Sequence record: MF360958.1
Length of the DNA stretch: 64,000 bases
Direction: 5' to 3' (one strand)
Shown here piece by piece: positions 50,515 to 56,083 of this stretch. The notes below the pieces were generated by a model, which saw nothing but the letters and a program-made list of their open reading frames with translations, had not been told where the DNA came from and did no database searches. How positions within the stretch are numbered: the stretch's first letter is position 1; the number at the start of each line of letters is the position of its first letter. Both the position numbers and the translations under genes were made by a program.

Positions 50515-50589
50515 GTCAGCAGCTAGTTTAACTGGGTAGAACGTCCGCCATAGGTGGAAGATACAAGTTCGAATCTTGTACTGTTGACA
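50515..50589 (+). pseudogene. degenerate tRNA (shortened anticodon loop CATAG, no CCA)
   Basis: GTCAGCA/TGTTGAC acceptor, D-arm, TACAAG-TTCGAAT-CTTGTA T-arm; TCCGC/GTGGA stem with a 5-nt loop. Confidence 0.6.
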
Positions 50590-50728
50590 TTTTTAAAAAG
50601 CATAGATGGATCAGGGTTAAAATCCTTGAGTGGTAATGTGAGAAATCACATTCCGGCTGCGGTCGTGAGCCCAATACGCTCATACATTTTTGAAACTGTC
50701 TGTGCTTTTTAATTTTGAAAAGAATAAT

Positions 50729-50850
50729 TGGGTAGTAGCTCAGATGGTAGAAGCAGCGCGCTGTGGGCCTTATGGGTAATATCAGGTTCAACTCCTGAAA
50801 GGCCAAAAGTAACGCGCAGGTCGCAGGTTCGAGCCCTGCCTACCCAGCCA
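50729..50850 (+). tRNA. tRNA-Asn(GUU) with a 45-nt insertion (50765-50809) in the anticodon
   Basis: TGGGTAG/CTACCCA, U1-A72 and G73 (Asn-type), canonical D/T arms and CCA. Removing 50765-50809 gives GCGCG-CTGTTAA-CGCGC. Confidence 0.75.
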
Positions 50851-50853
50851 TAC

Positions 50854-50883
50854 AAAAAGCCACCTACATAGGTGGCTTTTTTA
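50854..50883 (+). terminator. terminator ending tRNA operon 1
   Basis: AAAAAGCCACCT-ACAT-AGGTGGCTTTTTT. Confidence 0.85.
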
Positions 50884-53765
50884 TTGCACACATTAGCCCA
50901 CGCCTGTATAATGTTATCTATGACTCCAAAGAAAAGACAGAGAAATTTACAGTTAGATAAAAGTTTCCGAATTGGGCTAACCGTTCCTTATGATTTCGTT
51001 GTCCAAGTATCATCAGCTCGCCATTATACAATGAAAGAATATTCTGAACTAATACATAATGAAAAACATTATCGAATTCAAAAACATATAGATAGATTAA
51101 AATTTAGATTATACCGTGAATTTAGTTTACTTTTTAAACAATTAAAACTCAATTATTATTGGTATGATGTTGATATTATCTATGGAGATGAAATATCTTC
51201 TATGAATAAATTGACACATCTTACAAATTTTAAATATGATTTTCACTATTTAATTACTTTTAAATTTTCTCAACATGATTTGAATCGTTTAAAATTAGTC
51301 CATCAAGATTTTTATGACGTACTTATTGATGACACTAGGGACGCTATAAAGTTTCAGGATATGTTTGGATATTTGATTAAAAATTAGAGTAAAATTATGA
51401 CAAAGTACAGAAAACATAACCATAACAGACATAATGAATTTAATGTATCAATAACTAATATAGGGTTCAATCAACGTATCGGTTATAATGAAGATGAAGT
51501 GTTTAAAGAAAACTTTTCATTTGGATTAGAATTTGCTAAAAATAAAAACAGAGAAATAGCTGAACGCTGTGAAAGACTTGTAAGATTTCAACTTTATAAA
51601 GAGTTTATCAAACGTTTACAAGACAATAATATTAAAAGGTATTGGTTTGATATTACTTCAAGACATTCATATATGACAACTTATCTTTATATGGATGATA
51701 ATGATTTTGTAACATTAACTATATTTATCACATTTCAGATAACATTAAAAATTAATCAACATGATACTAATCGTTTGAAGTTATCTGATCCTGAATTTTA
51801 TGATTTGTTATGGGAACAGAACAGAATTCGTAATACAATAACACAAGAGTATCCTTCTTTAGACGTTCTTATAGAAAATAGAAAAACAAAATCATGACCA
51901 ATAAAAGAAGAAACAGATTATATTTTGAAAATGAATTCAACATTTCTCTTTATCAATTGTATGATGTTGTACAGATTGATTCTAAAAAGAGTTATAAAAG
52001 TATAAAAGACATTAGACATCATAATGATAAAATTCTTTATGATGTGTTAAACGATGTAAAGAAAAATTTATATCGTAAAATGATTAAACGATTTAAAGAA
52101 TCTGGTTTAAAACATTATTGGATTGATATAACTATGAATGCCAGTGATCAAGGTATTCATGAAGAATTACAAACAAAGAACAAACATCACCAACAAGAAA
52201 TGCATATAGTAACGTTTGATTTTTTTTATATTATTCATTTTAGAATTTCTCAACAAGATATTAATCGGTTAAAAATAACAGATGAAGAATTTTTTGATAT
52301 GTTAAATGATGAAAATGTAGATTTGTTTGAAAAAATATTCTGTTACACTATATCTAATTGATAAGTGAATTTTTATGACTGAAAAAAGAAGAGTAAACGT
52401 TTTATATAATAAATCGCATCGTATTGATATTGACCCAATTGGTTTTTATATTTTTACGGATCATCTCAACGATGACTGCTTAACATATAGTGGTGTCAAA
52501 CAATATAATGATAATCTTCTTGATCGTGTCTATAAAAATGTGAAGCGAGTATGTTACCGATATTTTATTACTAAGTTTAGAGAGAATAATATAAAAACAT
52601 ATTGGATGAATGTAAGTATTAGTATTGTTTATAATGATGTTGAACGAGATAGTTATAACAGAAGTGGTATGTATCCATATATATTAGAAGCTCAAATATA
52701 TATTTTCACAACACAACATGATTTTAATCGTTTAAAATTAACGGACTATTCATTATGTAATATTCTTAACAATTTAGATACGGCTGAACTTAATGATAAA
52801 AGTATAGAATCAATAAAAATCGAGTTATAAACTATGACACATCAAAGAAAAACTGATCCTAATTTATCCAAAGAGTTTCTAATTAGACCATTACCGCTTA
52901 TATTTTATTACTATTATGCTGATAATAGTGTAGTAAATTATGAAAACTTAAAAGATGACATATTCAATACTGAGCGTATGGTTAAAAGAAAATGCTATCG
53001 ATATTTCATTTATAAATTTAAAGAAAATGGAATAAAATCATATTGGATGAATGTAAGTATTAATTCAACATGTCATAATCTTTCCAGTGATTTTATAGAT
53101 TCAATAGTAGATATTGGTACAATAAGTACAATAAGTGAGCGTAAAGGTATTATCTATGATTGCGAGTTAAACATCAGAATAACTGTTTTATTCTCACAAC
53201 ATGGACTTAATCGTTTAAAAATATGCAATAACCAGCTTCATGACATCATCAATAACAAACATAATTCTCATATTAATAAACTACTTAACGAATGGTTTAC
53301 AATAAGTAAGAGTCAATTATGACTGAGCACAGAAAGAATAATCTTCAGAAAACTAATAATTATAACTTGGAATTCTTAATAGTAGAAGATATTGTATTTT
53401 ATAATGAATCAAGATTATATTGGGGAGAAGATTATGAAAAAGTTGTTCAATCAAATAAGGATATGTTTGAGTCAATTGATCAACGTGTTAAAAACACAGT
53501 TTACAAACAGATAGGTAAATTATTTTTCAATAATATTAGAAAAAGCAATTATTGGTTTTATGTTTCGTTAGAGATTATAAAAGGTCCGTTATCAAATATA
53601 TATGATAATAATCCTAATATAATAGTACGATGTTATTTAGCATTTACAGTATATTTATACATTTCAGATCATGGTATGAAAAAATTAAAACTTATAGATC
53701 AAATTATAGGTAATATCATTGAAGATGAAAATGGTGATAGACTTGAATATATTTTAGGTTTTTAG
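50872..53765 (+). CDS. tandem array of six paralogous ~150-170-aa proteins (50872, 51397, 51894, 52375, 52834, 53319)
   Basis: All have an MTxxR(K/R) start (first member likely at 50920) and share K.(L/C)YR.F...F, YW.(D/N)(I/V) and a C-terminal (S/T/N)(Q/D)(H/Q)(D/G).(N/K)(R/K)LK(L/I). Confidence 0.8.
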
Positions 53766-55998: not shown

Positions 55999-56004
55999 AA
56001 TTTA

Positions 56005-56083
56005 GGAAGGATAGCTCTAATTTGCGTAGAGCAGAGGATTGAAAATTCTCGTGTTGGGAGTTCGAATCTCTCTCTCCTTCCAC
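56005..56083 (+). tRNA. tRNA-Phe(GAA)
   Basis: GGAAGGA/TCCTTCC, loop TTGAAAA, ACCA. Confidence 0.9.

Follow-up and report, generated by a model that had tools for sequence, protein, structure and literature searches.

A tRNA-Asn gene split within its anticodon

The stretch of DNA that we analysed (the window, 64,000 nucleotides) represents, with 100% identity, bases 248001-312000 of the 440,001-bp genome of Salicola phage SCTP-2 (MF360958.1), which originates from a solar saltern and has Salicola sp. PV4 as its host. At 50729-50850 (+) the window contains a tRNA gene in which 45 extra bases (50765-50809) separate the anticodon positions 35 and 36. The part from 50729 to 50847 matches the Rfam tRNA model with 46 bits (gathering score 29), with around 48 nt inserted in the anticodon loop. 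ARAGORN in its default mode, i.e. without the intron option, passes over the gene, but when introns are allowed it reports a tRNA-Asn(GTT) that spans 50729-50850 and includes an intron of 45 nt (50765-50809).

Both the Rfam alignment and ARAGORN (with introns) delimit the two exons. The 5' exon (50729..50764, +) comprises the 5' strand of the acceptor, the D arm, the 5' strand of the anticodon stem and C32 U33 G34 U35. The 3' exon (50810..50850, +), which is in addition recognizable from its 90% identity to the 3' halves of the tRNA-Asn genes of many Pseudomonas phages, comprises U36 A37 A38, the 3' strand of the anticodon stem, the variable loop, the T arm, the 3' strand of the acceptor, G73 and CCA. 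The first-pass annotation, made from the letters only, had described the exons as otherwise canonical, and the features on which it relied (U1-A72, G73 and an encoded CCA) are indeed all present. The acceptor (7/7 pairs), anticodon (5/5) and T (5/5) stems are flawless; the sole exon defect is C13·A22 in the D stem. Exact removal of the 45 bases restores a 7-nt anticodon loop. When spliced in the 35/36 register, the product can be aligned from end to end with the tRNA-Asn that is annotated, without an intron, in Pseudomonas phage JG004 and is 83% identical to it, as compared to just 54-62% identity to the His, Thr, Asp and Lys tRNAs of SCTP-2 itself.

A piecewise ARAGORN scan of the whole genome recovered 27 tRNA(-like) genes, among which 50729-50850 is the single tRNA-Asn gene. 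The gene is followed within a few nucleotides of the CCA by a G+C-rich hairpin and a U run (50856..50884, +), likely an intrinsic terminator, which could be aligned to the terminator hairpins of leader models; a simple terminator scan did not list it, probably because the maximal stem leaves a loop of 2 nt.

Upstream of the tRNA-Asn gene, a tRNA-like gene is found at 50517-50588 (+; Rfam tRNA 40 bits, ARAGORN Tyr(ATA)), which may encode a decoy or otherwise non-standard tRNA. Its anticodon arm can be drawn with 4 bp and a 7-nt loop containing A34, or with 6 bp and a 3-nt loop. The spacer of 140 nt between this gene and the tRNA-Asn (50589-50728, +) can form several stable hairpins, including a T-arm-like CAGGG-TTAAAAT-CCTTG, and has no Rfam match. 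Directly downstream of the tRNA-Asn lie six tandem paralogous ORFs (50920-53765, +; SCTP-2 genes 340-345) that encode proteins of 148-166 aa with 22-34% identity to each other.

The insert resembles the top half of a tRNA

The complete insert (50765..50809, +) can be read as a nested mini-tRNA that corresponds to tRNA positions +1 to 76. This delineation follows from the ARAGORN intron call, the predicted fold, the architecture of related elements (see below) and covariance model matches. The unit consists of: G1 and a 6-nt acceptor-like 5' strand, GGCCUU (50765..50771, +), that pairs with 50799-50804 and leaves G1 in a mismatch opposite A 50805, where the related elements have G1-C72; a linker of 10 nt, AUGGGUAAUA (50772..50781, +; 9 nt in the other mini members), which carries the conserved GGGUA, a candidate mimic of the D-loop G18-G19; a T-arm mimic (50782..50798, +) with a 5-bp stem UCAGG/CCUGA and the 7-nt loop UUCAACU, a loop that is invariant within the mini-intron subfamily; the acceptor-like 3' strand AAGGCC (50799..50804, +), the pairing of which is seen in the fold, the architecture table and the covariation, and which follows the T stem without a spacer as it does in a tRNA; and a 5-nt tail A-A-AAG (50805..50809, +) that replaces the C72-N73-CCA of the family, such that the length of the tail is kept and the CCA sequence is not.

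In the predicted fold the 6-bp GGCCUU/AAGGCC helix is stacked straight onto UCAGG-UUCAACU-CCUGA. The modelled insert thus has the shape of the 'top half' that acceptor and T-arm form in a tRNA, with 12 stacked layers when G1·A is counted. Folded by itself, the insert has a free energy of -14 kcal/mol and a z of -2.2; inclusion of the anticodon stem brings z to -2.7. The loop UUCAACU and its closing G-C pair agree with the T-loop consensus; by our own estimate, the chance of finding a T-loop with G53, UUCRA and C61 closed by a 5-bp stem within 45 nt is less than 1e-4. An intron-bearing tRNA with a T-arm mimic, as proposed in the first-pass annotation, is borne out by the Rfam tRNA match, the ARAGORN intron call and the fold. 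The GGCC/GGCC pairing around the T-arm mimic that had been proposed along with it exists as well, but it is part of a slightly longer stem of 6 bp. A search of the 440-kb SCTP-2 genome by sequence and by covariance model recovered no second copy of the insert.

Nested tRNA-like introns in the tRNAs of large phages

Three patterns were used to search IMG/VR for elements with a similar anatomy: i) pairs of T-loops that lie too near to each other to belong to tandem tRNAs; ii) GGGTA combined with a UUCAACU arm; and iii) a T-loop followed after 12 nt by CCA and then, 14-26 nt further on, by a genuine T-loop. The first two yielded inserts of 44 nt with a like plan; these interrupt several phage tRNAs, unrelated to each other, within the anticodon loop and come from independent metagenomes and from contigs of up to 184 kb. 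Their plan reads: G1, a 6-nt stem strand, a 9-nt linker with GGGUA, a T-arm with the loop UUCAACU, a 6-nt stem strand, C72, N73 and CCA. In an alignment of eight such sequences (A2), 95.8% of the cells are paired and compensatory changes are found in 9 of the 12 pairs, while the GG of the linker is invariant. The covariation score of the alignment is 0.84, as compared to 0.28 in shuffled alignments (0 of 500 reached the observed score) and at most 0.22 in slid controls, and we therefore conclude that the structure of the mini-introns is under selection.

A script that implements the junction rule described below was run over the IMG/VR loci listed and brought the census, with SCTP-2 included, to at least 35 distinct nested introns, all located in phage tRNA anticodon loops and ranging from 40 to 86 nt. 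Among the matches listed, the lengths fall into two groups (40-48 nt and 58-86 nt), the tRNAs that are interrupted include those for Lys, Ile, Asn, Glu, Gln, Leu, Arg and others, and the insertion occurs after position 33, 34, 35, 36 or 37. Of the 35 nested introns listed, 30 are preceded by a U (at -1), 27 begin with a G (at +1) and 30 end in NCCA; these frequencies are biased, as the patterns were seeded from SCTP-2 and one scan demanded a CCA, and a U at -1 is partly expected because anticodon loops are U-rich. The remaining tails listed (ACAA twice, ACCC, TTAA and the AAAG of SCTP-2) are all 4 nt long. In the most complete cases the nested element is an entire tRNA: a tRNA-Phe(GAA) within the anticodon loop of a tRNA-Arg(UCU) (L059:5007-5082, +) and a tRNA-Gly(UCC) within that of a tRNA-Asn(GUU) (L384:2158-2232, +). 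Such complete nested tRNAs would be expected to be processed by the tRNA end-processing enzymes.

The SCTP-2 insert deviates from the family at points that may be the most important ones: G1 faces A72 and not C72, AAG takes the place of CCA, and the linker counts 10 and not 9 nt. A covariance model from which SCTP-2 had been left out ranks the insert first in the 443-kb genome, but with only 17.7 bits (E ~0.09 over the whole genome) and in a shifted register. By its sequence, it is a divergent member of the family. That it belongs by descent to the nested tRNA-like introns we consider very likely. The elements constitute a widespread and essentially uncharacterised class in large phages. According to blastn against INPHARED, SCTP-2 is the only cultured phage found with such an intron; the same search yielded no cultured-phage relatives of the other family members, save for matches to ordinary tRNAs.

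The searches returned several other elements. A 213-kb IMG/VR contig carries two nested introns (L097:3023-3084, + and L097:9635-9701, +) with 4-nt ACAA tails, which resemble SCTP-2 in that the tail length is kept and the CCA is not. One contig with a mini-tRNA intron contains, in addition, an intron of 47 nt (L174 6754-6888, +) with a 6-bp closing stem and an ACCA end, but with an internal hairpin loop, AGCAACA, that is not a T-loop. In six IMG/VR loci (L155, L158, L175, L188, L191 and L195), GGGTAG and a T-arm are followed by a conserved ATGGTAACGTAAATCCGCA-like stretch and then by a tRNA 3' half; ARAGORN reports this arrangement as 'Arg(CCG) with intron', and the element is distinct from the mini-tRNA introns. 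Covariance-model matches of intermediate score were rejected as family members, as they proved to be ordinary tRNA 3' halves. No convincing member was found among the 120 loci listed for bacterial and archaeal genomes.

We also looked for relatives of SCTP-2. The exon-plus-gap and insert patterns recovered no close relative from IMG/VR, and neither did a protein search of the same database with the family of six paralogues that lies downstream of the tRNA-Asn. A 19-mer of the 5' exon gave only chance matches in JGI metagenomes, located in G+C-rich coding DNA. In these IMG/VR and JGI metagenome searches no orthologue of the SCTP-2 tRNA-Asn was recovered, either with or without the insert.

One junction rule yields a canonical tRNA throughout the family

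In every family case examined, exact excision of the nested element from its position +1 up to and including its position 76 yields a canonical outer tRNA. Two loci, L077 and L173, share a common tRNA body and carry introns that are positioned 1 nt apart, and the rule turns both into Lys(UUU); the best cultured-phage match of L077 is an ordinary tRNA-Lys. The L160 group becomes Glu(UUC) and adjoins a Glu(CUC) gene, L062 becomes Ile(UAU) and adjoins an intron-less Thr(UGU) gene, and SCTP-2 becomes Asn(GUU). The registers that ARAGORN itself selects for such loci (Met, Val, Gln, Thr) were rejected, as they would make tRNAs that share a body differ in identity and would duplicate neighbouring tRNAs. 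The Asn register at 35/36, which had been favoured beforehand, is thus supported by the rule, as removal of the whole nested mini-tRNA leads to that junction, by the identity values given above, and by the presence of nested elements at the identical 35/36 site in three further phage tRNA-Asn genes.

The anticodon stems of the outer tRNAs have undergone double changes that preserve pairing: U-A to C-G between L146 and L160, and G-C to A-U between L077 and L173. These compensatory changes, seen in members other than SCTP-2, indicate that the outer tRNAs are under selection, which in turn indirectly supports removal of the introns.

A different reading of these data is that the functional product is not the spliced tRNA but the 45-nt mini-tRNA or the unspliced chimera, which could act, for instance, as a decoy for host anticodon nucleases or for enzymes that bind the tRNA elbow. 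The GG of the linker and the T-loop are conserved beyond what splicing alone might need, some of the nested elements are complete tRNAs and as such certainly products in themselves, and it is a familiar fact that phages and hosts are in conflict over the anticodon loops of tRNAs (PMC7824862). However, a mere scaffold would need neither junctions that are so exact that each removal restores a 7-nt loop, nor compensatory changes in the outer anticodon stem. We regard this reading, in which the tRNA-Asn frame would be no more than a scaffold for processing and stability, as improbable. A functional mini-tRNA or chimera could, moreover, coexist with splicing.

How the insert may be removed

With respect to the splicing itself, two established types of tRNA intron had to be weighed. 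The tRNA introns known so far from bacteria are group I introns, often located in the anticodon loop and preceded by a U at -1 (bioRxiv 10.1101/2020.01.27.920355), and the SCTP-2 insert has both the site and the U in common with them. That the insert is a self-splicing or self-cleaving RNA, of the group I or the small-ribozyme kind, is nevertheless very improbable: group I introns are self-splicing ribozymes of more than 200 nt, the insert of 45 nt is several-fold below the size of their core and lacks the P3-P9 elements, its conserved features are those of a tRNA, and none of the Rfam intron or ribozyme families matched anywhere in the window. The earlier argument that the insert is far too short for a group I intron consequently holds.

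The second type is the protein-only splicing of archaea and eukaryotes, in which an EndA-like endonuclease acts on a bulge-helix-bulge and the exons are joined by RtcB or through healing and sealing. Short tRNA introns are not known to be removed by any other route. RNA repair genes are frequent in phages (PMC7824862). The hallmarks of the substrate are two bulges of 3 nt that contain the splice sites and a helix of 4 bp in between. Yet inspection by hand of the predicted pairings of the SCTP-2 insert shows that no such motif can be drawn, as both junctions lie at one end of a continuous helix with a 4-nt 3' overhang; the insertion site furthermore varies from 33/34 to 37/38 among the introns listed, and homologues of RtcB, RtcA and Pnkp were not detectable in SCTP-2 by tblastn. 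We consider this route highly improbable, slightly less so than self-splicing, and have rejected both readings on the basis of junction geometry, size and the Rfam results.

The intron begins precisely at the 5' end (+1) of the nested element and stops precisely at its 3' end (76), i.e. at the positions at which the ends of a tRNA are made. RNase P cleaves 5' of position +1 of any acceptor/T-arm stack and leaves a 3'-OH upstream; it prefers a U at -1, a G at +1 and a 3' RCCA, and the first two preferences are those seen in the family. Enzymes of the RNase Z/BN type cut tRNA 3' ends and leave a 5'-phosphate downstream. A nick in the anticodon loop with a 3'-OH and a 5'-phosphate is the natural substrate of T4 Rnl1. 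A homologue of this ligase, T4 RnlA, is encoded by SCTP-2 gene 50 (Pfam PF09511, 73 bits; tblastn E = 3e-35), and gene 464 specifies a ligase that is Rnl2-like.

We propose the following scheme. RNase P would recognize the nested acceptor/T-arm stack and cut between U35 and G1, which would leave the 5' exon with a 3'-OH. A tRNA 3'-end endonuclease (of the RNase Z/BN type or another enzyme that measures from the elbow) would cut after nested position 76 and provide the 3' exon with a 5'-phosphate. The two tRNA halves would be kept together by the outer acceptor stem and the D/T interactions, and the T4-Rnl1-type ligase encoded by gene 50 would seal the nick in the anticodon loop to yield tRNA-Asn(GUU). 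Because 3'-OH and 5'-phosphate ends need no healing, the scheme fits with the lack of detectable Pnkp, RtcB and RtcA genes. The first-pass annotation had called for an endonuclease plus ligase or for a trans-acting catalyst, with which the set of enzymes suggested by the anatomy is in line; of the repair genes it had named as candidates, those for Rnl-type ligases were found and those for RtcB and Pnkp were not. In the IMG/VR contigs no RNA ligase genes were seen in the intron flanks that were examined, which is uninformative with respect to the whole contigs.

We judge the chances to be evenly divided as to whether the insert is a minimal, CCA-less nested mini-tRNA intron that would be excised by RNase P and a 3' nuclease and sealed by Rnl1, and put forward the full succession of RNase P, 3' nuclease and Rnl1 somewhat more tentatively. 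The 3' step is the least straightforward one for SCTP-2. On substrates that lack CCA, canonical RNase Z cuts after N73. Such a cut was rejected as the 3' step in SCTP-2, as the 3' exon would then keep three surplus bases and the loop would measure 10 nt. Either another measuring nuclease would perform this cut, or the SCTP-2 copy is decaying.

The latter possibility implies that the insert is a nested intron by descent which has lost its excision features (the CCA tail and G1-C72), so that the tRNA-Asn gene is dead or dying and the phage relies on the tRNA-Asn of its host. The AAG tail, the G1·A72 mismatch, the linker that is 1 nt too long and the weak score in the leave-one-out model all point in this direction, as do other odd and perhaps degenerate tRNA-like genes of SCTP-2 (50517-50588 in the window, and L008 6318-6472 and L008 9118-9248). 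Against decay, the stems of the exons are all intact and so is the nested stack, which has 12 layers if the G1·A mismatch beside the six Watson-Crick pairs of the acceptor-like stem is counted. The tail of AAAG still has the 4-nt length of the NCCA in the family, and members with other non-CCA tails (two with ACAA and one with ACCC) still follow the junction rule. Moreover, it is the single Asn tRNA of the phage and a terminator-like hairpin is retained 3' of it. Decay of the copy is thus rather unlikely in our view, although it deserves more weight than the other alternatives. We lean slightly towards the view that the SCTP-2 copy would be spliced to a working tRNA-Asn.

Relation to known systems

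Within the literature on tRNA-like, nested or phage tRNA introns, the only related report that we found concerns the Lak megaphages (Devoto et al. 2019, PMC6784885), in which 'enigmatic' tRNA introns are described, one of them possibly encoding a tRNA; the paper proposes neither an architecture rule nor a mechanism. We inspected the sequences in its Table S6 and found that all four intron types (Tyr, Phe, Thr and Gly; 79-114 nt) have a 3' acceptor-like stem and a T-arm, and that one of them is a full tRNA (PMC6784885). Like the SCTP-2 insert, the Lak introns are short, are not group I introns and reside in the anticodon loops of phage tRNAs. They differ in that their tRNA-like part is preceded by a 5' leader of about 26-30 nt, composed of a hairpin and an A-rich stretch, and in that their last letters are 'ca' or 'cta' instead of NCCA, whereas the SCTP-2 intron lacks a leader and opens directly with the acceptor-like stem of a bare mini-tRNA.

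The introns in archaeal and eukaryal tRNAs (processed by EndA/Sen and by RtcB or Trl1) are likewise short and lie in or near the anticodon loop; they depend on proteins and leave halves that are rejoined by an RNA ligase, as is proposed here. The SCTP-2 intron, found in a bacterial virus, differs from these in that it has the junction geometry of tRNA 5' and 3' ends instead of a bulge-helix-bulge, and in that the predicted ends are a 3'-OH and a 5'-phosphate, where theirs are a cyclic phosphate and a 5'-OH. In the tRNA repair of phage T4, the anticodon loop is cut by PrrC, healed by Pnkp and sealed by Rnl1. The likeness lies in the Rnl1-type ligase, which has a nick in the anticodon loop as its natural substrate and a clear homologue in SCTP-2; the difference is that the break in T4 represents damage that is inflicted by the host and needs Pnkp, whereas the break in SCTP-2 would be programmed by the structure of the gene and would not be expected to need healing of the ends. 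Finally, in MALAT1 mascRNA and in the tRNA punctuation of organelles an embedded tRNA-like fold also sets cuts at its own +1 and 3' end. There, no functional RNA results from rejoined flanks, whereas in SCTP-2 the flanks are the halves of another tRNA.

Bacteria and their viruses have been credited with self-splicing tRNA introns only, and phage RNA ligase has so far been viewed solely as a repair enzyme against anticodon nucleases. The nested tRNA and mini-tRNA introns could possibly constitute a third mechanistic class of tRNA introns, beside the group I and bulge-helix-bulge introns, in which tRNA mimicry would direct excision by RNase P (at +1) and a 3' nuclease (at 76) and a phage ligase would complete a programmed splicing reaction; we offer this as a working proposal with less than even confidence. 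If true, the combination of RNase P with a 3'-end nuclease and an RNA ligase would represent a new, protein/RNP-dependent way of splicing, the phage Rnl1/Rnl2 ligases would have a constitutive role besides damage repair, the 'enigmatic' introns of the Lak megaphages would be explained, and some phage tRNAs would be functional only where that ligase is present. SCTP-2 and Salicola sp. PV4 form a cultured pair, which makes the hypothesis directly testable and would make them the first cultured phage-host pair for such a test.

The elements also have a consequence for annotation. Standard procedures miss the genes involved, as illustrated by the default ARAGORN run on the SCTP-2 tRNA-Asn, and in intron mode ARAGORN often assigns a wrong register and amino acid to other members, so that phage tRNA repertoires are miscounted. 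Removal of the nested element from +1 to 76 according to the junction rule provides a practical fix.

Other tRNA genes of SCTP-2

The GenBank record MF360958.1 has no tRNA features. The 27 tRNA(-like) genes reported by ARAGORN are organized in two clusters, at 296.7-331 kb and 403.7-404.9 kb of the record, and no Ala or Arg tRNA was found in the whole-genome ARAGORN scan. Two tRNA-like genes, L008 6318-6472 and L008 9118-9248 (317318-317472 and 320118-320248 of the record), contain 74 and 36 extra nucleotides, respectively. Both have perfect acceptor stems, T arms and CCA, and their inserts are devoid of a T-loop mimic and a CCA tail; the second gene may be a Ser(CGA), with an Rfam score (26 bits) that is below the threshold. 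The tRNA-Phe(GAA) gene at 56004-56081 (+) in the window scores low (Rfam 35 bits) and is given an anticodon at position 38 by ARAGORN, which suggests that it has extra nucleotides in the D region.
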